Origin: Perkinsus chesapeaki ATCC PRA-425
Taxonomy: Eukaryota > Protista > Perkinsozoa
Length of the DNA stretch: 56,893 bases
Assembly (NCBI GenBank): GCA_013115145.1
Contig: JAAPAO010000182.1
Span: 1-56,893 of the forward strand
Reading direction: 5' to 3'
A program made the translations under genes and the position numbers. Below are positions 23,690 to 52,400 of the stretch, one piece after another (position 1 is the stretch's first letter; each line of letters begins with the position of its first letter). The notes below the pieces were generated by a model. That model saw only the letters and a list, made by a program, of their open reading frames with translations. It made no database searches and had not been told where the DNA came from.

Positions 23690-24056
23690 GCGAGCGCAAA
23701 AAATTTGTCGAATCTTTATTCCTTATTTCTTTTTGCTTGTCTTTCCATCACTCTTGTGTAGCGTTATTAGTCTCTCTCTTCAAGAGTCTCTCCATCTTTA
23801 GATGCTCAATGCATCGGTGGTGAAACTCACCATAGCATCCTCTAGCAAACTTGCATTGCGAAGACACCACAGATGTCTTAGAATTGCTGTTATTGACCAA
23901 CACCAGTAATTAATTACTAATAATGACGCATACAGTTCATCTTGACCTCACTTACCTTCTATTACCCTATCACTTGCTGGTCGTGGGATAGATTATAATA
24001 ATCATGTTGAGTTAACAGTTGGACACTTCCCTATCTACACAGCCATTAACTCCCCA

Positions 24057-27000
24057 ATGGCATCATCCTCAGCCGGGGCTTTAGCGGACATGATGGGCGG
24101 CGGTGCCTCTCGGAGCCAGGAGCGGCTTGTGGCACTGCTTTCGCAGGCTCATAGAGCGGACAACGTCGAGGTCCGAATCGAGCTCCTACAGCAGGCTGCG
24201 GAGCTGCTGCTGTAACGAATGCATCGAGAGGCTCCGTTTGATGGTCGTGAGGTAGATACCATAGCGCACCTAACGACCAGCGAATCGACGAGTTCTTGGA
24301 TACTTTTCTGGCCTTCCACTTGGACCGCTTGGCGCCTATCCGACGGTTCTGTGCCCATTTCGTGCACAACCTTTGTTATACTAGGTCACGGTAAGCTGGG
24401 CGCCGATGATTGGTGGGAAAACTGGCTCTAGAGTGACCTGGGGTTCGTAGTGCCCTTTCGGACTGTGAATGTGATATAGGCCAATTCGACTTTAGAATCT
24501 GATTTCATGGGACACCTTGTGGAGAGAACGATGGTGAGATTATGCAAGTCGAAGGTTAGGAAAGTTTCCATTTCGCCGGATGAGGTTTCAATACCATCTC
24601 CATCACGTACCTTTTTTGCATTACCGTATCGCTTTCGTTAGGTATTCGCTGAGGTGTCTTTCAACTCTCTGCACACTACTATCCGATACCGACACCGGCG
24701 TCGTTCGCTTGGCTTTGGAGGCAGCTCGAACCATCTACCCCCGAGCACTGTACTGGACGAGTGTTGTCCAGAAACAGGTGATTTTGTGAAGTTAATGAAG
24801 GCGAATGAAGATCGGGTTTAGGCGCAACAGCAACTTAGATTGATAATGATGTCTGGCGATGCCGATGGTCAGTCTGCGGCTATGCGGTACCAACAGCAGC
24901 AGAGCGCTGCTATGGCCAGAGAAAGTGCACAGTTGTTGAGGGCAGTGCTGGCTGGTATAGCACAGCACACTACTAGGGGTAGTACGGGGGGTTCACTGGA
25001 GCAATGGACTAGACTTCTCGGAGACCTGAGCTCGGGGATATGAGCATTGCGGAGCTCTGGTCAGTTTTCAAGGATGACAGTTTCTTTCATATAGTCGACT
25101 AAATGAAAGTCACTGTATCTCTGATATACTCGGTATTCCTGTGTATGAGCTTGCTCTAACTTCCCCATGCTCAGGCCGTCATGCTACATTCATAGCAGCC
25201 GTCGACGCCATCACAGTGGTGGCGCTGTGCCAGAGTTCGCTAGAAGGCAGCGGCACCGATACCAGCGGGAGAGCTCTCGGTATGAAGTCGCAAGCGTATC
25301 TTGAGGAATTCGGAGCGAGCTGCTTGGATGATCTCAAGTAGAATGGTGGGGTGCGTAACACACCGGGTCGACTAGTTGTTTAGGTTATCCTCGCCGTTGC
25401 AAGGAGATGCTGCGGACAGCTCCTTCCAGGGCGGACTGGACGAGGCACAGCTCCAGCGTGAATCGGAACAGATAGTACTTGCGTTATGTAAGATGATGCT
25501 GACTGTATCACATGGGGAGGAGTGGGATGAGGGGACTAATGAGGGCTCACAGGAGGACAAAAGGACAGAGGTAGTGGAGGCAGGGGCATCGAAGGGAGTA
25601 GGGGAATAAAGGGTCTTACCGGAAGGAGCACGTCTGACGTTTCTTCTTGCCCTGGGAATAAATTTTTCGGCTTAATTGTCATTATATCTCCGGATTAAGA
25701 ACACGGTGTGGTTACCGAGGAATACATAGTGGGTAGTGGGGTGGCCAGTGATTCCTGGTTTCGGTCGGCGGAAGGATAGCCCTTGTCCGTTTGTTGTGTG
25801 TTTTGCGAACGTGGGCGTTCGGGTTTTATGGACCCGTTTGTTCAGGCAGAGATGGTATCAGTGGTGAGGGCGCTGGGAGTGCTTGGTGCTGAGAGAGCGA
25901 CGGCTAACGCACAGGCAAGTTAGGCTGCAGGGATGAAGTAAACTGCGTATAAGATTGTGTTGCTCTGTCTCCTTGGACTGAATGCGACATACGCTCTGTG
26001 AGATTGAACTGGCTATTTCGTGTAGCTCTGCACTTGGGAGCCCTAGGCGACTGGAGACGGCCCTGAAGCCGTTGGATCCAATGGAGTTGGATCCTGTGTA
26101 GGTGGTACATGTTTTCCTTAGGGGATCATGCTGACCTTCGCGAGTGGGTTCGAAGATCTGATGGAAGTATCTAGCAAGACCGGCAAGCTCCGTTCGGCTC
26201 TTATACAGGTAGGATCGGATCTAGACTTGTCGAGGGTAGTGTTGCCTACTTGTTTAGGCAGTAAGGAGAATGCTAGCATCGCCGCAGTGTACGCAATGGC
26301 AGCCGAGGCTGGCAGCTATCTTACAGCAACTTCTACAGGCTGCAGGTAGTAGGGTAGTCGGAGAGGGTCTATGAAAATGAAAGCAATCGTTTGGGGTTGG
26401 GGAGCAGGGGTGGCTGAGGGGAGGGATTCGTTCGACAGCCCGTCGATTAGGCGTATCGTAATGAATGCGGGGATTACTATTGATACACATTACAGTGGAG
26501 AGTAGAGCTCAATAGCAGCTTCTCCATAGATGACATTGTGATCTTAGAGACTTCTTAATAGTAAAAATCGGACAGTACGAGGCACGAATGTGTGTGTCTG
26601 TTGTTCTTGTTCTATTCGCCCTATCAGGTCAGACAGAACAGGAGACTTTAGATCAGATGGTGTTCGAAGCAGAGCAGGCTAGACTGCGTGAGGTCTTCGC
26701 TGGTGAGGTAGTCCGAGGGGATTGTGGGGATCATATGGTTATCTTGCTTTTTCCCGATCTCCCTATATATTAATTTAATGTAAACACGTGTTAATGTATT
26801 GCAATCCGAGCAACTGCTGCCGTGAATGGAATGTAGCGGATGACAGTGGTGTAATTCTCGAAGTCTCGTGGCCATGCTTTCTGCCGGAGCCCATGACGTG
26901 GTTTAGGACCCCACTCGACCAGAGCCTCATGCTAAGCGGAGGAAGATCGAAGGGGATAAGAGAACAGGGGAAGTGAAAGCATTGCCTGGTAGAATGCAGA

Positions 27001-30000
27001 GAGGTTGATAGTGTAAGAGTAGCATTAAATTAGCTAGGTGTCGACATGGTTGATGAGGAGCACGTAGTAGCTGTGTGTGCCGTCCGAGCTACGGGATCGA
27101 ATGATTCTCTTACCAGGATGGTGCAGAAGTTGTTGGGGCGGTTGCCGAGGAAGCTTATCAATGTAGGGCTCTTGGGACGGTCGAAAAAGGACGGATGTGT
27201 GAAGCAGCGCGTTTAACGTATCTTTAACAACTTGGACACGTCACTAAAAGCGCAATGCGCTGGATATCCGCGATGATTCGTGTGGCGCGTGCTCTTGTTG
27301 AAACTCCCTCGTCAAGGGGGATTGCTGCAGGGCATTTTGAAGCGGTGTTGGCTCTGCGGTTGAGTCGCTAGTTTCATATGTATAGACTGCTTACTACTGC
27401 GTAGTTAGATTATGAACCCCCTCGAGAACGTGAACGTGTTCTTCTGTCTTCAGCCGGAAGCCACAGTTCAAAGAGTTATAAGGGTGACAGATGCGGATGG
27501 CTTCAGCAATACGGCCACGGTTCAGCGGAAGCTCGATCGGGCGAAGGCTCTGTTCAGCTGTTCAGCGCAAGACTTCTTGGACGAGCCTTCTGAGGAAGGT
27601 AGGAAGGTTGGGGGTGTTACCGTTATGAGGTGCTCGTTGTAGATGAGGAGATCTATGAGGAGCCGCCGGAGGTGGTGACACCGGTGCCGAAGGAAGCGAC
27701 TGTGGCCGCTATGGATGCTGCAACTGCTAAGGAGGCAAGGAACGATCTGGCTAAGGTGGGTATCTTTGGATTCTGCCGAGTGCGATAGTCCGTGGGTTTC
27801 GTGGGACTGTGCTCATCCTAGAGTGATGAGGTTTTTTGAGCTTGATGGGATGCTGAGGCAGAGACATTTGATACTGTTTCATAGTGGATCAATTTCTATC
27901 AGTGGGAATCCTAGGATAGTCTGTCTGTTAGCGTAAAGCATGTAGGGATAGGGGCGAACAGGGGCTTATCAAATAGCCCGCAGCGGTGGGAATGAAAATA
28001 GTGGTGAGGTCAGGTGATATTCTCCAGCGTTCTGAAGGCCATGAGTCGATACGAGAGCTCGGCGTTGAGCGCGCCTTGCTTCGATAAAACCGCCACACAA
28101 TGGTTCAAGGACACTTATTTGTGTCTAGTAACACATCTCTGTACGACAAGGGGGAAGGAGGTGGAGTTCACGAAGGCAGCCATGGAGTATCTTTCGGGTA
28201 AGTTGTTGTTATCTGCGACCTCTGCAGTGGAATTTGGGACGAATTCGGGTTTGGGTTTTGGGTTTCCCAGTTGATTAAGCGTTGTTTAGATCGGACTAAG
28301 CCGACCGCTGCGACAACACAGCAGGTTCATTTGGTAAGTTGCATTTTTGTGAGGTGCTGAGCAGAATTGGTGGTCAGGTCGAATGTGGTATAGTGGATTT
28401 GATGGCAAGTCGTCATGCCTTGGATGCCGCCTATAGAGGTGAGTGTGGTTGATGCTTAGTTAATACAGGCGCGGCATTAAGCTGAGGCTGCATGGACTTA
28501 ATTATTCCTCTCGTGCATGCAGGCTAAACTAAGTGATGTATTGTAGATCACATTAGAATGTATTTCCTATACGAAGGTGAATAGAAGTAGTCGTTGTGAG
28601 TAACTGCCGATGGAGGGCTGCTCGCTCTGGCGGTAGCCAGTCGATCGCGTTACGGCTTTCTTGCGCTGGAGTTGGCGAACTGCTGGAGAAGCTGATAGAG
28701 CGAGTAAAGTCGGCGCTTGAGTGTGCGGCTTTGAATATGACAGGCGGCATTTAACGCTCGCCAACCACCAGCTGCATTCACCTGCTGCTTAGCCTCCTCT
28801 TTAGACCGGAATACCGCTTTGTCGTACGAGGGTGCCGCGGAGATACTTCTAGCCGATATCAACAAGCGGGACTATCTCACAGTGTAGCATCATCAACGCC
28901 CAGAGGTCTCCTCCCAGAGCCCTTGTCAGTCATGACGTTCGAGCCCTCCTGTTGGCTCTACCTGCTGTCCCAAGATGCTTCGTGGATTTCCTCTGGCACT
29001 CAGCCTCGTCATCTTCGGAACCAGTGAAGCAGAGACGGCAAGTGAGATGATCGTTTGTATGCCGCTGATTGCAGTTGCACTGGTAGGCACTATTAGCCTT
29101 GCGAGCTGTGATGGTGGAAAGAGTGGGCGCTGAGCGCTCGGCCCCAGGAGTGCCGACGACACGGCAAAGGTTAGTGACCCATAGACCTTCGCGTTGGAGC
29201 TTTCTTTCAGTGCCTTCTTGGGGCTGGCCCGCACCAGCACGCTGGGTTCAACAGAGGAGATCAGAGCAGATGCCACGAAGCTGATCTTGGCGCCTGATAA
29301 GTTCTATAGCCCTGCAACCCTCCCTGCTGTCGACGCTGCTACTTGCGAGGGGACCTGGCGATGGCCTTAGTGAGCTCGATGGCCGTTTTGATGCTCAGAA
29401 TCATCGGTTCTTTTTAGCCACGGAGATGGAGCAGATGAGCAAATGGTGGACCCATCGCGAGCGGAGGACTGGGTGGACGCCGAGTGGCTGATGAACAAGT
29501 GAGACGGGCGCAGCTTCCGAGAGACCCTATGCTGCTGTGGATTCAGTGGCTTGGAGGAATACGCCTTCGGCTGTTTACTGGACGCCACCGCCCCGGAGCT
29601 CTGCGAATTCGCACCGTTCATCACCCATGCGCTGAAGGAAGACTTGAAGGGAGAAGATGAGGCCGCAGCTACGGCGAGAGCTACACTGTAGGCTTCAGCC
29701 GCGCTTTTTTCAGAAAACGGCTGATGATGAAGCGAGTGGATGGCTCACATAGAGATCAGGAAAAACTGATTGTGTTAAAATTTGCCAATTCGTTTTTCGA
29801 AATGGGGGTTCTCAGTATTCTCGCCGAGTACCAGAGCGGTTCGTATGTCGATCGCAGGTCGCCTGGATTCTATCGGCTGCAAAAGCTGCACACCGTTTTG
29901 CGCTGGGATAGCCCTTGGGGGTCAGCCCTTGAATCTTCGTCCTTCTAGGTTCATGCAAATGCTGCCAAAGAGGCCGTCTCTACTTCACTCGGTGGTGGGC

Positions 30001-37101: not shown

Positions 37102-38507
37102 ATGTCTAACCACCCCGACGCCAAGGTGGTTTTCGTCATCGGCGCTACTGGCGTGGGAAAGACTAAGATGTCCCTCGACCTGGCACAGATCTTGGAGGGC
37201 GAGATCGTCGGTGCCGATTCAATACAAATGTATAAGTATTTCGACATCGCCAGTGCCAAGCCAAGTCGACAAGAGATTGGCACGGTAGGCTCTTAAGGAT
37301 AGTCAGTACAGCAGTGTTGCTCGTGTCAGGTGCCGCACCATCTAATAGACTGTGTCACTCCTAATGAGGATTACAACGTGGCCAGATATGTGAGTGGCGC
37401 GACGGCCGCGATTGAGGATATCGTTTCAAGGGGGAGAACTCCTATTGTAGTCGGAGGTAGGATGGATCATTTTTGGGATGATACCGTTTGATAAATGCAA
37501 TTTAAGCCCTACTCATCGCTTGTAGTGATGACTTGTTATAATAAGTGACAGTAGTCAGTGTACCTGTGATGGCTCAGCTGCGAGAGTTGTTTTAATATCC
37601 TACTATTCGCGTCGGGGAGCTCCACAGTAAAGTCAGTTATTTAACTAACACAGACAAGTCGCTCACGGTTGTTATGCTAATCTTGCCAGGCACGGTCCAG
37701 TACATCACAGCGCTCCTCTGGCCGATGTCGGCTCTGGAGCAAACCGTCCAGCCCGCCAATAGCACTAGCGAGATCTCTTCCTCCGATGAAGCGTCCAGCG
37801 ATCTCTACGCCAAGCTCCAGGCCGTGAACCCAGTAGCCGCCACCAAGCTGCATCCGCACGATTTAAGGCGCATCAAGCGGTGCTTGGAGCTCGGTGCGAC
37901 CACGGCGGAATCGGGAGAGTTGCGCTACGCCGGAGCGAGAGTCATCTGGCTCACGTGCGACGATAAGGAAGTCTATCGACGACGAGTATCGAAACGAGTG
38001 GACACGATGGTCTCCGAGGGCCTCCAAGATGAGCTCGAGCGGCTGGTTGTGCCGGGGATAAAAGACCGGACGCTGAAGTGGAACCGGGGACCTCTGCAGG
38101 GTATTGGCTATAAGGAGTTTCGGGAGTGGGTAGAGAATCCCTCCACCGAAAGCTGGGAACGATGCGTTGAGAAAGTGAAGACTGGCACTGTGAAGTACAG
38201 CCGGCAACAGGTGAAATGGATTCGCAATAAGATAGAACCGTTTCTAGAAGTTTGCCGCATCGACACAAGTCGAGCTGGCGAGAGCTGGCCGGAACTGGTG
38301 TCAATGGCGAGCGACTTTGTGAAGAAAGAAACAAAGAAAGTGGCGGTAATTGACAAGATTGAGTGGAAAAAATACGACTGTGAAATATGTGGCAAAGACG
38401 GAATAAATGGCCCGAATGAGTGGGAACAACATCTACACAGCAAGTTGCACAAAAGTCGAAAACGGAAAGCCAAGAGACAGTTGCAGGCGGAGCGAAGCGA
38501 TGTTTAG
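37102..38507 (+). CDS. TRIT1: tRNA dimethylallyltransferase (eukaryotic MOD5/TRIT1 type)
   Basis: IGATGVGKT P-loop, ADSIQMY, VPHHLID, PIVVG|GT, LHPHDLRRIKR, QGIGYKEF, YSRQQVKW, and C-terminal zinc finger CEIC...WEQHLHSKLH. Confidence 0.95.
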
Positions 38508-38578: not shown

Positions 38579-41500
38579 TCATGACGGCATTTTCTCTTCT
38601 TGCCGGCGTATTCTGCGGAACAAATCTGATTCTCGCGAGACAGCTGGTGCGGCCATAATGGCAGAGGTCGAAGATAAGGCTCGGATCTGCCAGCCATGAC
38701 TTCTCAACTGTCGATCAAGTACGCTTACTTCGTCACAAAGAAACCTGTCCAAGGCGCTGGTGTGGACGGAAGTCCCCAGGCCATCTCGTATCCGCATGAT
38801 AGAGCTCACGCGGCCATCAGATCCGTAAGCGCTATGCCTGAAAGCCGCATTCAAAACCACCTCCGTAACCGTGCCTATTAAGCTTCTTAAGGCTCTTTAA
38901 AGAAGCTTGTGAAATAGGCCCCAGGAGGTAGTCTACATTTCGCCCTGGCGGTACATTTCCTCCACAGCTTCCGTGTGCTTGTCAACTCTTCGAGTTGCCA
39001 CCATTCTCGATTGTGTCTGAGACTGTGTTGTCATTCGGGGGGTGGGTTGCCTACTTGATCATCTTTGCGAGATTCTCGTTTTGCTCTCCGGCCTAAGGCG
39101 GACGCCATGTGATGGAGGCGAACCTGACCGAAATAAAACATACTCATTATTATCTAGTTTGCTAGGGCTCCTCCAGGATAGTGCGGGCTTGATCCGGAAC
39201 GGTTTGATTCCGCCACACAAGGGTCTCCATTTAGTCAAGGACAGTTTCCAGGTCAAAAGGGATGGCTTGAATAATGTACAGAGGACACATGTGAGTCAAT
39301 ATAATAGATTAATGTGATGCTCTATGCTATGACGATGGCTCTCATGAAAGGATAGATCTGCTCTCAGATAGTTCCTCTTAAAATCAGATCGTCTTAGATT
39401 CCGGAATGTCCAAGCGAAGCTTCTGGACACTTCAAGAGTGTGCAGCAGGCATCAGCCATGAAGCATTATCCCTACATGAGCTCGTGCTGCTATAGCTTGT
39501 CGGCGTGCTGGGCCAATGCATTCGTTTACAGTGTTAGCCACATAGGCGTATCGGGCTGGTGTACCTGCTTCACGGTTAGCAGGCATTTCCTTAACAATAT
39601 CTCCTCACTCATTCGCTTGTGGGCCGGAGGCTGCAGTGCGGCCAAAGCGGACCCGAGCTCTCCCCACGTGGTGCTGCCGCTACCGGCTGTATCGAGGAGG
39701 CTGAATGCGACTGTACGGCACAGCATTGAAGGCTTTATGCGCTACTAGAAAATACAGTTCAAAGTCTGGTCGCGGATTGTTGTACGCCTAAGTCCGACGA
39801 GCCTTCTGATGAAGCGTTTGAAAGATGACAGGGTAAGAGTATCGGCGTCAGGAGGAGCTGAAACATCAACAGGTTGCGGAGCTCAGACGCGGACTGCCGA
39901 CGTACCGCTGGTCTCTGACTTCCTTCTCTGTTTGGCGACTCCAGCTGTAACCATCCACAATTTGCCCATAAGTCTAGAACAGATAGACCTCATCAAATTG
40001 CTGGCAATCGTGCCCACCTTGTGGCGTGCTGTTGCTGGGTATGCCGTACATCTGGCAAAGCTAATAACCATTGTAAGATGGTACTAGTCTTACTTTTCAG
40101 GCCGACTGATGCTGCTATTCTGGCAGCCTGCTCCGCCTTCGCACGGTGGTTCCATCGCTTAACTTCCTGGTCATGATGTCGCTTTTGAAACTCTTCAAGG
40201 GCATCTGGCACACTTCTATATTTACGCACCTAACAGTCGCAGGTTCGACCCCTGGCGAAGGTATCTCGTCTAACCAGCGGTGCCTGAATTTCCATCACGA
40301 GGATTTGTGGACAGAAGACAATGAGGCCGAGCATGAACTCGTATATCGGTATTTGCTCCATTCGCCCGCCGAGCGTGATCTTCCCGAAAAACCGTTTGGT
40401 CTCCGCGGGAAGAATTTGCAATGGCTCGAGAAGGCTGGCCTGAAACAGTTATCGAGAATCCCGCTCCTGGGCGTGGGAGCTGACATAGTCCTCCAATGAC
40501 AAAGCAAGTTGACCAGTGACGTCGACCAGGTACAACGCGTCCATAATTGCGTAGTAGCGGTTGATTATCTGATACACCACCTGTCGTGTTTTTGTGTAGG
40601 AGCGATACCTTCCTGCGGAACTCCGACAAACTGAAATCTGGCGTTGCAAGGCGAAGGCCCGAAACGAAATGCCTGAAGTGTGATTCTCAAGCCCGGAGGC
40701 GCAGGGTGGTTGCCTCAAAAGGAGGGGAGGGAAGTCGTCGTCGTCTTCGATCTCTGAATCTGTAGCGATGCCGCTGTCGGACGAGTTGGACGTGACGGTC
40801 TCTAGTTGCGAGGCATTGGCGCTCGACAGACGCTTACCTGCGATGACTCAAAGTCGCTGGATTAGGAGAACAGCTGGGTCTACTGCGAGTTGTAGAGCTG
40901 TCGGAACCTCTCCTGTCGATCCCAGCAGTGGGCTGATCGACCGAGTTGGCGGCCTGGTTTTGGACACTGTCCGTCTCATCATCATCGTTATCCGGTACAA
41001 GAGGAATCGCTGCCGGTATAGCATCAGATAAGAACTTATGGACGAGCTCAGCATGCCTAACAGTTAACGGCCTAAGTCCCACGACGGCACCTTGGCGTGC
41101 TTCGAGTTTACTCTGCGGGAAAGTTGAACTTCGCGGCGAGCTTCTTCATGTCCGATCTCGCGAGGTGTTGCTCCATACAATCTTCAGGGCTCCGCCGGAT
41201 GTTTAGGATCTTCGGGATGACTTTGTGGATTTGCAAAATATCGCACCTGCCATGGCGCTTGTAGAAGTGGGTGTGCTCCTCTACCACACTTTTCCTTCAT
41301 AACCCTTTGCATCTCCTCGAGGAATAGAAAAGGCGATACTGCAGTCATGGCGCTACACGGCAATATAAACATCGGAGCTGTGTGGAAGCACGCCACCTGA
41401 ACAGCTCTTCCTTGTCGAGGCCACCGCTGCCATCCAGATCAAGCTGCTTGAAGAGCAGCTCGGCCTCCTCGTGGAGCACGCCGCACTGCGAGATAACCTG

Positions 41501-43570
41501 CTCTCGCACTAGTTGGAACATCACCCGAAAATTGCCGCCGACCTTCACAAATTGCCTTTCATCCAGGCCGTCATCGGTCTCCAGCCAGATCTGCCCAATG
41601 TGGTTCAAGGCCGCCGACAGTGAACCGTACTTCATAATGAGCCGCCTGCATCAATCGATGTTAGTGCTGCCAGTGGAAAAAATCGCAAACCTGCGAAATC
41701 CCTCGAGGCTTGTTATTTCAGCGGCACTCTCGAGCGTGTCCATGAACTCCTGCACTGAAACTCCACCATCGCCGTTGATGTCAATCGCGTCGAATATCAT
41801 TCGAGCCTCGGCAAGGTCGCTGCAGATCTGAAGGATGGTGACTTTGATAACCGCCATTCCACTCTGCCGGTCACAAGTTAATTACCCGACGCCGACAACC
41901 TTCACAGTCTGAAGGTTGTCGGCACTACTCGGAAATGAAATGAATAACAGCGATGCCATTTGTGATAACAGCGTTTATTTGGGGTCATGAATCACTCTCA
42001 TACGCCTAGCATGTTGAAAGCAGTGCACTTCTGCCCCTTCCCCGATAGCTATGATGACGGGCGAGGCTTCCGTGCCAATCACTCACTTTGGTCTTGATAA
42101 GAGTGTTGCTGAATTCCTTTATTTTCATATCCCTTTCGGAGCCCACCAGAGCTATTCGCGAGAAGGCCTTCTGCAAGGAACCGAATCTTGCAATCAGCTT
42201 CTTTCGGAATCCTTGAAGGACCTGATCAATCGATTTTGTCACGAGCGGAGATGCTATCCAATCCCACCATTTGCTTGAATAGGATCGCGTTGCTCTTGGC
42301 ACGTTGTCGGTCTTCCCTGACGCGATCTCTTGAGGTCTCAGAGCCATCCCCGCGCGCCTTGGCTGTCGCGTAGCTAGGCTCGCACCTTGCCGCCTCAGTA
42401 ACGATCTCGATTATATCAGGACCGTATTTGTCTAAAGGGGGGCAATGATTTAAGCAGGCAGAAATAACGTCGGTTTTACTCAGAGCTTGTCGCCTTCTCT
42501 CCCGCGTATTCGTCGAGCGCTGCTGCATGAGGCTCTGCACAGTACAGACGAGTCACGTTGGAAACAAGGCCAGGCCCACCTCTCGAACTCGTCGCCATAA
42601 AATTTCATGCTCGTCAGTAACGTTCGCGGGAAAGATTTCGTCCAGTACCGACGCGACTTTGTATTCTGATTCTAGAGCTTCACCGCAGACCTGAAGGGCT
42701 CTCCAGGGAAGATGAGCCCCCATGGGAACGAACCTTGCCGTCTGCATATGTTGCAGCTTTTGGCAAGGGCGGCGGCAGCTGCTCCATTGCCGCCCTGGCC
42801 GAATTCCCAACGATGAAGCGCTGTATAAGCGAACCTATCAGAGGAGTAACAATAGAGGTTCTTAACGCAGTCGTCTCACCGTGCCTATACTTCGGGCATT
42901 GTTCTTGCTGGAGTACTGCCGTTGTGTCGAAATGACGTAACACTACGGAAGGTTTTCGAGCGGCGATCAGGAGGAGAGTCTCGCGGCTCACCTGGTCTCG
43001 TCCGTGACTTGTGAAGTATTGCTGTGGCTGGGCACTCCTCTGTAGCTCTGCCATAACATATCAGTTTGAAACTAGTTAGAAGCGAGCGCCTACTGTGATC
43101 GCTGTTGAGAACGTAATTTCTGATCCCACCGCGCCGATGCGTGTTGATGCAGACGGAATGCGATCTGCACACAGACACGTGAATGATGTTCGCAAAGGAC
43201 TTGTTTGTTGTGAAGTCGCGGATGCAAAACGTCTACCTCGGATCGTTCGGCCTGGTTAAAGCCTGACTCACCCCAGTGCGCTCGTAGCAGGTCTCCTGTG
43301 GAGTCTGGCAGGATAACAATTCAATAACAGTTTCCACGTTTCCATGATATCTTACAGCTCCGTTCGCCTGTCGACACCCACTTGGGATCAGAATTGAAGA
43401 GTCTTTGCTGTAGCGGACGATGCGGCGCGTGTGTCAAGTGATGGTGTGGCGCGATGGCTTTGATACGGGCGAGTGGTATCGGAGATACTAAACATGCCGA
43501 GATCGCCGGCCAGCATTAACACGGCCTGCTGACCTTCAACAATAGCTTCGGTTTCACGCTCGTCAGTCAT
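38579..43570 (-). CDS. Large multi-exon EF-hand protein
   Basis: EF loops DLDGSGGLDKEE and DINGDGGVSVQE, degenerate DTAGSGSTTWGE, and repeated (K/R)(Y/F)GSL..AF helices. Full exon chain not resolved; could be more than one gene. Confidence 0.6.
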
Positions 43571-46213: not shown

Positions 46214-46718
46214 ATGTTGCTTCGATACGCCGCTGTAATAGTGGCAGGAATTGCTCTGATCTTCACGTAAGTGCATCATCACGGTTCATCATGGAGGTGA
46301 CTTTATCAGACTGGAGGGTTGCGGTGGGTGTGGAGGGTGCTGCTGCGGAATGTGCGCCTGCAAGGAGCATCATCCGACGGTACCGATTGAGACCTCGGAA
46401 TTGAGGGACCGAGTGCTTCGTCACCAACAAAGAATGAGAATACTGGAGAGGAAGGTCGAGGAGATAGACTGTGACTGTGATGAGGATGATAAGAAGGGAT
46501 CGACAAGTAGTGACCGCGCGCCGTTAAATTCGTGCCCTTATCCTCGTACCATTTTCGTAGCCCCCAGCAACAGTACTGCGTCACCACAGCTCTCTCGCCA
46601 GTCGAGCACTCTCAATGAGCCTCCCCCCTCGGCCGACCCTGTGAGACGATCGAGCTCCCTCAATCTGGAACCTCCAATGCCAATTGCAAGAGGCCCTCCA
46701 GGCGTTATGATGGACTGA
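46214..46718 (+). CDS. Signal peptide / LEGC Cys-cluster protein lacking the 4-Cys domain
   Basis: MLLRYAAVIVAGIALIFT|(GTAAGT..ATCAG, phase 2)|LEGCGGCGGCCCGMCACK, then a short coiled coil and Ser/Pro-rich tail. Confidence 0.75.
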
Positions 46719-46903
46719 GGTAGGCTACTATCTCCATGAACTTTGTTGCCGTATACTGCCTTAGATAAATTCGATGGATGGCATGCTGCTCAGTGTAATG
46801 CATGTTATGGTTAACCTTTGTTGAGAGCGCCTCTTGTGTTGTTGTCTCCTCTTTGACCGTTATAATGCAGTTCTATCCATCAAGCCCCTTTACCATCTAC
46901 ATT

Positions 46904-47791
46904 ATGAAGTTCTCAAAGTACACCAGCTCGATTACAGCTGCAGTCGCTGTACTCCGGTGAGTTCCTCTTCGGTTACACCGCATGACAATAACTTGGTGAA
47001 TCAGCCCGACTGTGGTATTTGGTCATGCTGCTGCAGGAGCAGCATTAATGCCCATCTCACTCGTTGAAGTTAAACAGACCGCCACCGTTCCTACTTGTAA
47101 GCTTTGGGCTCGCTGATCAACACATGGATCATTATTAGGTGTTCCGCTCGGCTTCCCAGCACCGGACACGTCAAACCCTCTTCGTCTGGCGCCCCCAGGA
47201 ACACCCCTCCTCCGGTTCGTAACAACGCTCCTGCGAGGACGACAGCTCCTCCTCCTCCGCCGCCGCCTCCAAGACCAACACCACGAAGAGAGGTGCCAAG
47301 TAGCAATCATCAGGCGTCATCGCAGGACTGGGCCAATGTAAGCAATTGTCGGTTGGGGTGTTATTAGCTGTTTGATACTAACCCGAATTTATGTTCAACT
47401 GGCTTTATTAGCTTTAGCTTCAACTGTTAGGTGAGCCCAACGGAAGTCGAGGCAAGTGGCAAGAAAAGCTGCACTATCCGCTCCAGTGACGGCAGTAAAA
47501 TCACTGTTTATTCTGAGCCGGCCGCCGGTGGTTCGATATATCCGAAGACAACTGCACAGTGCAAAATTGGGTAAGCTGACATTATCATCCTGACGGTAAA
47601 TGGAAGTCTTTTTCAGAGGAGTAATGAGAAGTGTTTTCCAATTTTTACGCGGACTTGAGCGCATCTTTGGCGATAAATTCAGCAGTTACTTCTTCAAAAT
47701 GGATTGTAAAGAAGTCTTTAGAAACACCGGCATCCAGGCAAGCAGTAACGATGAAGGTGTTGCTGAGATGTGCAGGAAGCTTACATCATAA
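46904..47791 (+). pseudogene. 4-Cys domain family member F (apparent 1-nt frameshift at about 47163)
   Basis: MKFSKYTSS...|..VEVKQTATVPT|CVPLGFPAP-[shift]-GHVKP...QDWAN|VSP...SCTI...AQCKIG|GVM...MDCKEVFRNTGI...AEMCRKLTS*. Confidence 0.65.
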
Positions 47792-50590
47792 ACATGACAA
47801 GCTCATACTTCATAATGACATGTCCTTGTTGAGATTTTGAATGTTCCAACAATCACGGCAATTGTGTTTGTCAATTTATCGGCTTGCGGTCCGTAATAGC
47901 GCATCTTAACGATTCATTTTCAATGCTTCTCAAGTGGCTTTGGCCAATCCTTTCGATAATCATAACCTCTGGGTAAGAATAAGGTGAAACTCCAACAACA
48001 GACGTCTGATGATCTCAGGGTGGAGTGCCCGAAATGTCGAGGGGCTGCTCCACGGTTGTCCAGTTTTTTACAACAGCGCAACCGACGAGAGGGCTGTCCT
48101 TGCCATGAGAGCTCTACGTGATTACATCGGTCATTTGACTCTCCGCTGTTCCTTCTGTGAAGCAATGTGTGCGCTGCGTTGCGAAAGGTTTGGTCATCAC
48201 CGGTGTTGCTTGGCCAGGCCTCTTACTTATTTCGTCACCCAAAATGACAGTCATCCGCCTTGGTCTCGTGGGGATGATCTACGCCCTTCTAGGAACAACG
48301 TAACTCTCTTGAAGTCTGTGTTTCGGCGATAGCAGTCTTATGTTCAGGTTTTCAGGTTGTGGTGGCTGCTGTTGCGGCTTCTGTGGTGACCACACAAGTA
48401 GCGTTCACGAACAAAGTGTTGAGTATGATGATTCTTCGGAGCGGTCGGCCGCACTGTTGCACTTGGCAAGGCAGCTGAGCCCTCGAAGGAAGGAAAGAGC
48501 TTCAACGACACCTGCTGGTAGCGATACCTGGATTCGAATTCCTATTGGTCAACCGGTCTTCCTTTAGATGATGGCACGTCCACGAAACTAGCCCCTAGTA
48601 GCACAACGACACCTGCACAACAGAAACGGTTATCTAATATGCTGGACATGGCAACAACCACAACACCGCGGATTCCGACTACCAGACCGTCTACCACTAC
48701 TGCTAGGAGAACTACTACCCCAAGGACAACTACTACCACTACTACCACAAGAAGAACAACCTCTCCAACACAGCCTAGTACTCCGCCGCGAATGGTGGAT
48801 CCATCAGAACCAATGTCTAGTAGCAATCGTCAGCCTCCATCTTCGAACTGGGCCAATGTGAGTTTTCCAGCTTCTACCTTAAAACTTCGCTAACACTCAA
48901 GGCATTGTCTCGAATTGCTGAAAGCCTGTCGTAGCCTCACGTGCATTCCTTCCTCGAAGCTATCTTTTAGCCTATGGTTCACTAGAAGTGGATATTCATC
49001 AGACTACGACCCATTCTCGTTCGATGTCAACCCTCTGGTCAGCAAAACAGGTTAATACTCTATTACTTTCGCCAGCGTCTATTCATTCCTGTGACAACGT
49101 GCTTGAAGCTCGTAGCGCTGAGCTACGTCTAATTTCTTATCTATGATATGATTTATAACTGTCAAAGTGTGCTTTATTATTCCCAAACTTCAGAGATGGT
49201 TGTTCGGCTGGCGAGCCGGGGGCCTACAATATGTGCGTGTGGTCAGGTTAGCCCTATGGAGCAAGATCCTAGTGGCAAGAAGAGCTGCACCATTCATTCC
49301 AGTGACGGCAGTAAAATCACAGTTTATTCTGAGCCGGCCGCCGGAGGTTCGATATATCCGAAGACAACTGCACAGTGCAAAATTGGGTAAGCTGACATTA
49401 TCATTCTAACGGCAAATGTTAGTCTTTTTCAGAGGAGTAATGAGAAGTGTTTTCCAATGTTTACGCGGACTTAAACGTATCTTTGGCGACAACTTCCACA
49501 CTTACTTCTTCAAAATGGATTGTAAAGAAGTCTTTAGAAACACCGGCATCCAAGCAAGCAGTAACGATGAAGGTGTTGCTGAGATGTGCAGGAAGCTTAC
49601 ATCATAAACATGACAAGCTCATACTTCATAATGACATGTCCTTGTTGAGATTTTGAATGTTCCAACAATCACGGCAATTGTGTTTGTTAATTTATCGGCT
49701 TGAAGTCCGTAATACCGCATCTAGCCCAATCATGCCCAACAGTGGTCTTGGTCAGTCCTCTCGAAAGTAGCAACCCCTCGGTTTAGAAGCTCTCCCTGAG
49801 AGTTATCTGAGAAACCGACTCCAACAACAGACGTTTGATAATTTTAGAGTCGAGGGCCCGAAATGTCGAGGGGCTGCTCCACGGTTGTCCAGTTTTTTAC
49901 AACAGTGCAACCGAAAAGAGAGCTGTCCTTGCCATAAGAGTTCCACTTGATTACATCGGTCGTTTGACTCTCCGTTGTTCCTTCTGTGAAGCAATGTATG
50001 CGCTGCGTTGTCAAGGGCTGGTCATCTCCTCTAGTGTTGCTTGGTCAGGCCCCTTAATTGTGTTATCACCTAAAATGTCAGTCATCCACCTTGGGCTTTT
50101 GGGAATGCTTTTCGCCATTCTATCAACAACGTAACTCTTTTCAAGTTTGTGTTTAACGATACCGTTTTCTGTTTAGGTTTTCAGGTTGTGGTGGCTGCTG
50201 TTGCGGCTTCTGTGGTGACCACACAAGTACCGTTCACGAACAAAGTGTTGAGTATGATGATTCTTCGGAGCGGTCGGCGGCACTGTTGCACTTGGCAAGG
50301 CAACTGAGCCCTCGAAGGAAGGAAAGAACTTCAACGACACCTGCTGGTAGCGATTGATACAGATTCCTATTGGCTTATCAATCCTGTTCAAGATGATAGC
50401 ATCGATCAAGAGTCTACAACATTGGTGCCGAGTAGCACAACAACACCTGCACAACAGAGGCGGTTGTCTAATATATTAAACATTGGCACTACAACTACAA
50501 CACCACGGCCCCAGACTACCAGGCTGTCTACCACTACTGCTAGGAGAACAACTACTACCGCCACTAGCACTACCACAACAACCACCACCA
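47455..50590 (+). repeat. Recent tandem segmental duplication, two imperfect copies offset by about 1.82 kb
   Basis: About 47455-48760 aligns by eye with about 49271-50590, including exons, introns and the intergenic spacer (e.g. 47600 vs 49416). Confidence 0.9.
48244..49607 (+). CDS. Signal peptide / FSGC / Thr-rich / 4-Cys domain protein (member G)
   Basis: MTVIRLGLVGMIYALLGTT|FSGCGGCCCGFCGD...TPA|DDG..T-rich..SSNWAN|VSP...SCTI...AQCKIG|GVM...MDCKEVF...EMCRKLTS*. Confidence 0.8.
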
Positions 50591-51264
50591 CTAGAAGAAC
50601 AGTTAAAACGCCTCAAGAAACACTCGCAAGGGTGCCCACCACTAGTGCTAGCCGGCGTTACTCCACGAGTACAACGCCACCATATTTCCGCGCTCGATCG
50701 AGTCCTCCTCCTCCTCGGACCCTCCCTCCTACAGCGGAATGGTCTGGAGTGAGAGCCTGCCACCCGAGGATTTATAAGCTCTCTCCTCAGTTACCGAACC
50801 ACCCGCAACCAGGAGATAATCAAGAATGCACTGTACAGGATGGTCCTTTGATGGCGAGATTAACCAAGAACATCGTCAATACTAGAGGGTGCTTCCGAGC
50901 ACGTCTTGAGCTACATTGCGGTGACAAGTAAAGATCAAGTTGAACTGGAGAGCGCCTTCTCATTCATATCTTAATTTCGCGTAGATAGGTGAACCATCTA
51001 ATGATTCTCCTGCCAATATTGTATAATTTGTTCATACTTATATAACGTTATTCAACTGGCCTTGATTTCTATCATATTTTCAGGAGATCGTTCACCCTAT
51101 CCACCTCCACTCTCATGAATGATATCTTCTGGTCCACAGCATTCAAGCTCATGTACCAAAGGCAGATTCGTTGTGGCTCCATCTTCTCGACCTTCAACAT
51201 ATTAGCGAACAGCAAAAAGGAGGGTATACTGAAAATGTGCGAAAATGCGTCAGGTTCGAGATGA
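50075..51264 (+). CDS. Signal peptide / FSGC / Thr-rich / 4-Cys domain protein (member H)
   Basis: MSVIHLGLLGMLFAILSTT|FSGCGGCCC...AEWSG|LPNHPQPGDNQECTV...RARLELHCGDK|RSF...IRCGSIFSTFNIL...LKMCENASGSR*. Confidence 0.75.
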
Positions 51265-51550
51265 GACAAACGACGACCACTGTCAGACTCGTCATTGTCC
51301 TTTCCATGTGCACCATGTAAAATGTGCTTGTCCCTTTGGATCCTGCGCGAAGCACGTTTGTCAGAAGTGCTTTCCGGCGGTGTTTAGTTTTACATCGGCG
51401 GTGACTGACATCTAGGAAACCCATGGTCATTTATCCGGTCCTAGTCTTCCTTATCTTTTCGTATAAAGATCGATACAAGGCTGCTTCGTGGTTCGATTCG
51501 ACAGAATTAATACTTCATACCAGGCCTCTTTAATCCCTTTAATTTCCATC

Positions 51551-52400
51551 ATGGTACACAAGTACGTCATAGCTGGATCGATGTAAGTCGGGGCGGGGGC
51601 GAGTCGAAACGATTCGACCTTTTTATTTTCAGGATTGCACTCGCCAACAGTCTCTCCGCGAAAGTTCCTTTCTTTCGCAGTACTACGTCTCTCTTGCAGG
51701 TTGAGCTGAAGACCGTGCCAACTTGTAAGTGGTGTTTCCGAAGATGCTCGTCTAGAGCGTTTCTGCTGCCCTTCAGGCGTTCCAGCTGGATTCCCGCCTC
51801 CAGGCGAACAACCTCGTGAAGGCTCGGGGAACCCATCCAAGGGCACGTCGCCACCAAGTTACAGCTCGTCGAAAAACCCACCACCGCCGGCAAAACTTGA
51901 ATCGCGGAGCAAGGACAGTCCACCCCCGAGCTACCGTTCATCAAGGGACGCGCCGCCGCCTAGCTCCAGTTCGAGCGGTGGTGCTTGGCCTGGAGTAGGA
52001 CTGCACAGAATATAGCGTTTAATTGGCGTTGTTGTTTGCAGCTGGACAGTAACCCGCGTCAAGGCCTTAAACAAGAGTGTTTGGTCTCTGATGGGCGAAA
52101 CGGGGTTAAATTGACTAAGACGTTAGTTACGATGGAGAAGCTCTGCTTCCGAGCGGAGATTCGAATGACGTGTAACGGGCAGTAAGTTTGTGACAAGTAT
52201 CGCTGTCTGCACGGCACTGCGATCCCTTCAGGAACAAGTGGATCGGCCTGGGGCAAATGCAGAGAGATCCCAATTTCAAACCGGCGATAGATGCGATGAG
52301 CTACGACAAGTTCATCGACTGCCAGAAAGTCTTCAGATCATTCGGTATATCGGCTCAGAGTAAATCCGATGGCATCAATCAAATGTGCCAAAGAGCCTAA
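51551..52400 (+). CDS. Secreted Pro/Ser-rich / 4-Cys domain protein (member I)
   Basis: MVHKYVIAGSM|IALANSLSA...VELKTVPT|CVPAGFPPP...GAWPG|LDSNPRQGLKQECLV...RAEIRMTCNGQ|NKW...IDCQKVFRSFGI...NQMCQRA*. Confidence 0.8.

Follow-up and report, generated by a model that had tools for sequence, protein, structure and literature searches.

A complete 56,893-nucleotide (nt) contig of the clam parasite Perkinsus chesapeaki (strain ATCC PRA-425, contig JAAPAO010000182.1; hereafter the window) contains two arrays of plus-strand genes whose products end in a small domain with four ordered cysteines (Cys), which we call the head. Array 2, the subject of this study, occupies positions 46904-52400 and comprises genes F, G, H and I; array 1, some 25 kb distant, holds six paralogs, A to F1. 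From the comparisons given below we consider it likely that the region from 46.2 to 52.4 kb encodes a second cluster of Perkinsus-specific exported stalked proteins, whose head is homologous to that of array 1 and whose genes have multiplied by local duplication and unequal crossover.

Genes and gene models of the cluster

The head makes up the C-terminal ~100 residues of F, G, H and I and terminates 3-8 residues beyond Cys4. A regular expression for the Cys3 motif, run over all six frames of the window, returned only seven matches, all on the plus strand. Four of them lie in array 2, at 47699 and 49515 (both MDCKEVF...EMCRKL), 51166 (IRCGSIF...KMCEN) and 52314 (IDCQKVF...QMCQR), and three in array 1 (16019, 18597 and 21251). 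The C-terminal motifs that an earlier sequence-only reading had quoted for F-I were thus confirmed on the plus strand, and the same expression recovered their array-1 counterparts. Reading of the three plus-strand frames revealed three further array-1 heads near 17678, 19524 and 20438, bringing array 1 to six members and the family to ten, and not nine as had been counted. The limits previously assigned to array 2 are correct: 46904 is an in-frame ATG of F and 52400 the stop of I. Either of the two head-exon profiles matches exactly these ten places, which excludes chance as the source of the head-motif observation.

Enumeration of splice sites confirmed a phase-2 GT-AG intron 1-4 codons past Cys2 in all ten members; it measures 43-53 nt in all but H, where it is 156 nt long. 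The head exon follows a phase-0 intron in F, G, H and I and in A, C, D, E and F1 of array 1. The sequence-only reading had placed a linker exon ending in W-x-x in front of this phase-0 intron. This is true of G (NWAN), H (EWSG) and I (AWPG) and, in array 1, of D (KNWSVY) and F1 (KKWSRM), which are probably the genes it had called C and E, but not of F, where the corresponding DWAN piece is out of frame. The series of intron phases, 2,1,0,2, is identical in F, G, H and I.

Joined spliced models were used solely for checks of the models themselves, for the tree, for the ratio of nonsynonymous to synonymous substitution rates (dN/dS) and for one local BLASTP; searches ran exon by exon, and whole proteins were entered as database sequences. 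Our models of F, G and I reproduce GenBank proteins letter for letter (Table 1), and the tags of these three genes are consecutive (FOL47_002840-2842). H carries no tag and is unannotated in GenBank; its five exons form an open spliced model with GT-AG introns. The P. olseni protein P0017 (310 residues) is alike in architecture and 38% identical to H over 318 columns (E-value 5.5e-62), and a HMMER search of 1.84 billion representatives returned no P. chesapeaki H protein.

In F, what appears to be the 3′ part of a former linker lies downstream of exon 3. It is rich in proline (Pro), and over its last 44 nt it shares 77% identity with the tail of the coding linker of G. Exon 2 and the start of exon 3, for which homology to I fixes the frame, are read in a different frame from this part. 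GenBank splices P0002 at 47218|47219, leaving the DWAN piece (47326-47337) intronic. A model that combines exon 2 with a DWAN-ending exon 3 was rejected as out of frame; skipping of exon 2 opens the frame at the cost of an exon conserved with I, and we regard it as no more than a possible alternative transcript.

Among the GenBank models of P. olseni and P. chesapeaki, several have the look of fused neighbouring genes: E and F1 are joined in both P0001 and P0018, C- and D-type heads occur together in P0026 (1013 residues), and P0005 extends well past the head of A. Family counts based on such annotation would be too low.

Table 1. Features of the window discussed in the text (window coordinates; Thr, threonine; Ser, serine; ORF, open reading frame)
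Feature	Span	Exons or parts	Strand	Character
Gene X		46214-46266, 46310-46718	+	signal exon with phase-2 donor; LEGC and Cys cluster (GCGGCCCGMC); Ser/Pro-rich tail
Gene F (FOL47_002840, P0002)	46865-47791	46865/46904-46956, 47005-47096, 47139-47218, 47431-47570 (head A, Cys1-Cys2), 47617-47791 (head B, Cys3-Cys4)	+	front type B, head type FG; spliced model reproduces P0002 exactly
Putative former linker of F, 3′ part	47219-47337		+	Pro-rich; ends DWAN before gtaagc
Gene G (FOL47_002841, P0003)	48244-49607	48244-48299 (signal), 48348-48517 (FSGC and Cys cluster), 48568-48857 (Thr-rich stalk, NWAN), 49247-49386 (head A), 49433-49607 (head B)	+	front type A, as H; head type FG, as F; model letter-identical to P0003
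Gene H	50075-51264	50075-50130, 50177-50346, 50393-50748 (Thr-rich stalk, EWSG), 50791-50927 (head A, extra fifth Cys), 51084-51264 (head B)	+	front type A, head type HI; unannotated in GenBank
Gene I (FOL47_002842, P0004)	51551-52400	51551-51582, 51633-51724, 51777-51994 (Ser/Pro-rich linker, AWPG), 52042-52181 (head A, fifth Cys), 52232-52400 (head B)	+	front type B, head type HI; model letter-identical to P0004
Tandem duplication, copy 1	47294-48813		+	F linker tail, F head exons, intergenic DNA, type-A front exons, to the middle of the G stalk exon
Tandem duplication, copy 2	48814-50601		+	~296 nt extra in third intron of G (48858-49246)
Array 1, genes A-F1	15556-21355		+	six paralogs; head-exon profiles and splice enumeration
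Array 1, head exons of A		15786-15910, 15955-16120	+
Array 1, head exons of B		17424-17578, 17626-17914	+
Array 1, head exons of C		18313-18491, 18545-18818	+
Array 1, head exons of D		19276-19424, 19475-19637	+
Array 1, head exons of E		20183-20334, 20383-20548	+
Array 1, head exons of F1		21013-21152, 21196-21355	+
tRNA-Pro(AGG) gene	19755-19826		-	within array 1
tRNA isopentenyltransferase-like ORF	37674-38507		+	between the arrays
EF-hand exon	41345-41635		-	between the arrays

Common ancestry of the arrays and extent of the family

Comparison of the array-1 and array-2 profiles of the C-terminal head exon (exon B) with hhalign gave a P-value of 1.7e-7 and a probability of 94%. The alignment scored 35.9, against 8.0 ± 1.8 in 200 column shuffles (maximum 15.4), none of which reached as high. 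Whole-protein profiles aligned over 83 columns, from Cys1 to Cys4 (E-value 2.4e-6). The proposal that F-I belong to the array-1 family thus holds: the profile-profile comparison, named in the sequence-only reading as the test that could refute it, came out significant, and the intron positions are common to both arrays.

Independent AlphaFold models of an array-2 head (P0016, alignment A7, pLDDT 75) and an array-1 head (P0008, alignment A8, pLDDT 78) both begin with three long strands and one short strand and continue with helices. In either model, strand 1 contains Cys1 and strand 3 ends at Cys2; the penultimate helix begins at Cys3, and the last helix contains Cys4. Judged only on the order of secondary-structure elements, the two arrays appear to have the same predicted fold. 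Taken together, the profile alignments support common ancestry of arrays 1 and 2 as one family.

Such likeness might also have arisen by convergence between two unrelated small Cys-containing domains, given that pairwise identity between the arrays is only about 25% (25-32% among the ten paralogs) and that exon A is unconvincing by itself. Convergence would, however, have to produce significant alignments of both exon B and the whole proteins in the face of a shuffle control, together with an intron of identical position and phase, the same exon order and the same predicted order of secondary structure, in two models that also share many weak top fold matches; we give it almost no credence.

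The extent of the family was assessed in an assembly of 41.7 Mb in 3544 contigs. Each head-exon profile gave exactly ten matches genome-wide at an E-value ≤ 1, all of them on a single contig (C897) within 37 kb, and no other copy was detectable with these profiles at this threshold. A weak match to the exon-2 module of G at C3078:10936-11037 was set aside, as no similar gene was seen there on reading. When the exon-B profile was run with HMMER against the 1.84 billion representatives, 16 proteins were retrieved. The credible ones come from P. chesapeaki or P. olseni, save for one entry from a sequencing-run assembly, and the rest are repeat artefacts. Entries P0012-P0015 were judged spurious, having several short stretches only or no stretch that passed alone; P0012 is a metagenome protein with a repeated Cys motif. 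The tree contains one-to-one P. olseni orthologues of A, C, D, E, F1 and H, and that of H (P0017) shares a syntenic 71-kb contig, which carries FOZ61_000369 to 000381, with array-1 orthologues. Head identity between the two species is 71-82% in array 1 and 48% in H.

The two clusters had previously been taken to suggest a large dispersed multigene family, of which they would be the visible part, as in the variant surface families of other parasites. The presence of two clusters with ten divergent paralogs, the fast evolution of H and the fragmentation of the assembly would be in keeping with this idea. It is nevertheless largely refuted, and in our view highly improbable, since both profiles lead only to the ten known places in 41.7 Mb and the all-database search yields about a dozen representatives, which all derive from this contig or from the syntenic P. 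olseni genes. Detectable copies in the genome number ten, on one contig, with relatives seen in two Perkinsus species only. On these searches the family is Perkinsus-specific and local. It is undescribed: no paper on it was found in the literature, nor on lipoboxes in Perkinsus or on whether the Perkinsus homologues of Lgt, LspA and Lnt lipidate proteins.

The DNA between the arrays had been described as housekeeping genes. The only recognisable pieces in it are a tRNA isopentenyltransferase-like ORF (PF01715, E-value 2e-32) and an EF-hand exon (Table 1). Across ~6 kb between the arrays (24000-30000) the GC skew is +0.12 to +0.26, and this interval has no long ORF and no Pfam match. Within array 1, a tRNA-Pro(AGG) gene lies between D and E, antisense to them.

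Mosaic structure of F, G, H and I

Two types of front can be distinguished ahead of the heads. In type A (G and H), the signal exon precedes an exon that starts with FSGC and carries a Cys cluster. In type B (F and I), the signal exon precedes a 92-nt exon that ends in ..TVPT, with a split Cys codon leading into VP.GFP. A gapped local alignment of the fronts of F and I, spanning the exon 2/3 junction, scored 75 against a shuffle null of 30 ± 6 (0 of 2000 as high); BLASTP of the 30-residue front exons of F and I was not significant, nor was that of X against G or P. olseni H. The heads also fall into two types in the tree, F with G (support 100/99) and H with I and P. olseni H (86/91). By these assignments the four genes are a two-by-two mosaic, in which all four combinations of front and head occur with identical intron phases.

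Gene X has a type-A front only, without the four-Cys head, and its stop codon lies 1 nt ahead of a donor-like GTAGGC. None of 2000 shuffles scored as high as the local alignment of X with exon 2 of G, but the Cys cluster alone drives this score. X might represent a truncated relative or supply an alternative front to the exons downstream.

Positions 47426-48758 match 49242-50601 with 84% identity over 1375 columns (blastn), colinearly through exons, introns and intergenic DNA, and 47294-47342 match 48814-48862 with 78% identity. The two copies of this tandem duplication meet inside the stalk exon of G, within about 56 nt (48758-48814). Identity differs between their parts: it amounts to 86.5% in the intergenic DNA (~450 nt), 88-94% in the head exons, 97.6% in exon 2 and 67-80% in the introns that flank exon 2. 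The extra 296 nt in the third intron of G are single-copy in the genome and neither a repeat nor a transposon, and ARAGORN detected no tRNA gene in them. The simplest history would make G a chimera that arose when the stalk exon of H and the linker exon of F underwent an unequal crossover of ~1.5 kb. The dN/dS of the F and G heads, a check proposed in the sequence-only reading, is 0.19 (dS 0.27); therefore, both copies are held under purifying selection.

Exon 2 of G and H combines the Cys cluster with an acidic stretch and a basic RRK motif, and its motifs SGCG.CCC and RQL..RRK recur in the P. olseni H orthologue. The near-identity of this exon in the two genes suggests strong constraint or gene conversion, and the RRK motif might be a protease site.

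The unevenness of identity along the repeat, with exon 2 so much better conserved than the introns adjoining it, could also be read as a sign that G is an old independent paralog in which gene conversion has homogenised the two halves, the front from H and the head from F. Conversion of this kind would have to account for homology that runs continuously and colinearly through introns and ~450 nt of intergenic DNA, and for copies that abut as closely as one tandem duplication predicts, so that we hold it to be very unlikely. A different concern is that array 2 may be decaying, with F, H or X as pseudogenes and only G and I working. The frame conflict in the linker of F, the lack of a GenBank annotation for H, and the headless X with its stop just before a donor-like site would all fit decay. 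Against this, the four head-bearing genes all have open spliced models with canonical introns, the F-G heads show the low dN/dS given above, and H has a full-length P. olseni orthologue of the same architecture; decay thus seems unlikely, though somewhat less so than conversion.

Predicted export and comparison with known systems

The N-termini of the family proteins are hydrophobic. Between them and the heads lie stalks that are Thr-rich in G (21% Thr), H (25% Thr) and P. olseni H (19% Thr and 16% Ser), Ser/Pro-rich in I (25% Ser and 27% Pro) and short in F. We propose that each protein consists of an N-terminal signal, a low-complexity stalk, mucin-like in G and H, and a C-terminal head in which a small beta-sheet part containing Cys1 and Cys2 leads into three to four helices, the last two of which carry Cys3 and Cys4. 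Local growth of the family would have combined tandem duplication with unequal crossover at or close to introns of matching phase (2,1,0,2), and crossover would have mixed fronts A (signal, Gly-Cys and Cys cluster) and B (signal, ..TVPT|C VP.GFP) with heads FG and HI. G would be the youngest product, in which an H-type front gives way, within the stalk exon, to a tail and head of the F type. The heads may serve as extracellular binding modules at the surface or associated with the wall, held off the cell on a flexible and probably O-glycosylated stalk.

Several observations weigh against this proposal. Exon A alone gives an E-value of only 0.017 in the comparison between arrays, with 1 of 200 shuffles as high, and is thus barely significant. 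A phylogeny of the heads, suggested earlier as a check, does separate the arrays, but the split has a support of only 78/71 and F/G sit on a very long branch. Word-index searches with the heads of I and G retrieved nothing beyond the query heads and F, hence no orthologues of F/G or I, and a search with the H head exon in open frame within a restricted region found nothing; the missing F/G and I orthologues may reflect fast divergence of array 2. Further copies could be missing from an assembly as fragmented as this one. The spliced model of F is tentative owing to the frame conflict in its linker. The two disulfides that we would expect, Cys1-Cys2 and Cys3-Cys4, are paired from the positions of the cysteines in the predicted secondary structure. 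Finally, F and I have no lipobox, and tethering through a front Cys, considered next, is not a feature of the whole cluster.

An x-G-C junction directly follows the hydrophobic core in eight of the ten genes and in X, as well as in P. olseni orthologues. We compared the N-termini with a PS00013-type lipobox pattern, with the Cys at position 15-35. It fits G (Cys23), H (Cys23), P. olseni H (Cys29) and A of array 1, and does not fit F, I, B and P. olseni E. Past the lipobox Cys, G, H and P. olseni H have an acidic segment, which favours an outside-facing C-terminus. From these sequence features, G, H and most array-1 members are probably tethered through their N-terminal Cys by a lipid or a disulfide, and F and I, with ordinary signal sequences, are probably released.

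The genome encodes candidates for part of a bacterial-type lipidation machinery. PF01790 (Lgt-like) gave four matches of 30-41 bits (cut-off 24.9) on contig G000:C25, interrupted by stops as in intron-split genes; three or four such genes lie there in tandem (G000:C25:4523-14345, minus strand). The copy we examined reads GKVGCFISGDGCYG, with Lys, Cys and Asp at the places where E. coli and other bacterial Lgt have the signature residues Arg, Asn and Glu. Five intron-less CN_hydrolase ORFs of Lnt-like size (514-549 codons) were found on G000:C3426, C69, C1090 and C3060. LspA (PF01252) had no genome match at an E-value ≤ 0.001; one exon-sized LspA-like match at C3015:82226-82369 reached 19.7 bits (E-value 0.02), below the cut-off of 25. 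A P. marinus EST (expressed sequence tag) match to Lgt was listed without comment in a 2010 survey (PMC2868825).

The proteins may instead be plainly soluble, with signal peptidase I cutting at or near the Gly-Cys and no lipid being attached; the conserved Cys and the Cys cluster would then serve disulfide cross-links, for example in the trophozoite wall, or metal binding. The lipobox-free F and I would be expected on this view, as would the several array-1 members in which Glu or Arg near the Cys breaks the strict lipobox, the sub-threshold LspA match and the altered signature of the Lgt-like copy. It explains less well why the x-G-C junction should persist in eight of ten genes, in X and in P. 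olseni orthologues otherwise only 38% identical, or why Lgt-like and Lnt-like genes are present. We regard a soluble fate as a serious contender that falls somewhat short of an even chance. The most far-reaching version of tethering, a bacterial-type lipoprotein pathway in the Perkinsus secretory system, with nuclear Lgt-, LspA- and Lnt-like genes and with G, H and most array-1 proteins as native substrates, strikes us as rather doubtful. If true, anchoring by an N-terminal diacylglyceryl-cysteine would here be seen for the first time in proteins encoded by a eukaryotic nucleus, and the mosaic of fronts A and B would be a natural experiment, offering tethered and released versions of each head.

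The heads match no known family or fold. Pfam searches with exons and whole proteins gave nothing below an E-value of 0.009 and nothing recurrent; DUF6281 matched one exon (E-value 0.14) and did not return with whole proteins, and a New_glue match to B of array 1 is due to a Thr-rich low-complexity stretch. The best E-values were 0.94 in a profile search of the PDB and 0.63 with Foldseek. VIA-align, run wide over 48,161 chains, gave best Z-scores of 4.2 and 4.3 for the two models and none of 5 or above, and the ESM Atlas returned TM values below 0.5 and nothing usable.

The present analysis fixes the size and limits of the family, with no hidden large family behind its single locus, and adds the unannotated gene H and the headless relative X. 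Array 2 offers an unusually clear case of new genes arising, as its mosaic suggests, from unequal crossover between phase-matched paralogs. Its products are candidate surface or wall proteins of a shellfish pathogen, and the occurrence of lipobox-like (G and H) and lipobox-free (F and I) fronts on the same two head types provides a test bed for Perkinsus lipidation enzymes (homologues of Lgt, LspA and Lnt).

The closest relative of array 2 is array 1, whose P. olseni entries are automatically named 'Lipoprotein' in UniProt. Both arrays have the homologous four-Cys head, the phase-2 intron after Cys2, the phase-0 intron before the head, the signal-stalk-head layout, the plus-strand orientation and P. 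olseni orthologues or paralogs. Array 2 differs in having one exon more (phases 2,1,0,2 versus 2,0,2). Its heads are longer and more hydrophobic between Cys2 and Cys3, where they have an additional helix; H and I contain a fifth Cys, the Gly-Cys of G, H and X is followed by a Cys cluster, and F and I have a non-lipobox front. The only comparable orthologue pair, that of H, has diverged much faster than those of array 1.

Beyond the family, G, H and P. olseni H resemble bacterial lipoproteins, the substrates of Lgt, LspA and Lnt, in their positive start, hydrophobic core, [FL]-S-G-C and flexible tether. Unlike these, array 2 consists of intron-split nuclear genes whose head has no bacterial homologue, and F and I lack the lipobox altogether. 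Mucin-like stalked surface glycoproteins of protozoan parasites combine a signal, a Thr/Ser/Pro-rich stalk and a small folded domain. Array 2 is similar in module order, tandem arrangement and varying stalk length, but is not related to them in sequence or fold, belongs to a tiny and local family, and has no C-terminal hydrophobic tail apparent after its heads as a signal for a glycosylphosphatidylinositol (GPI) anchor. In Hedgehog and Spitz, an N-terminal Cys is palmitoylated by lumenal MBOAT enzymes. Although these proteins have no homology to those of array 2, they provide a functional analogy: once the signal is cleaved off, the new N-terminal residue would be a Cys (Cys-Gly-Pro in P. olseni H), which could be acylated within the secretory pathway without machinery of the bacterial type.

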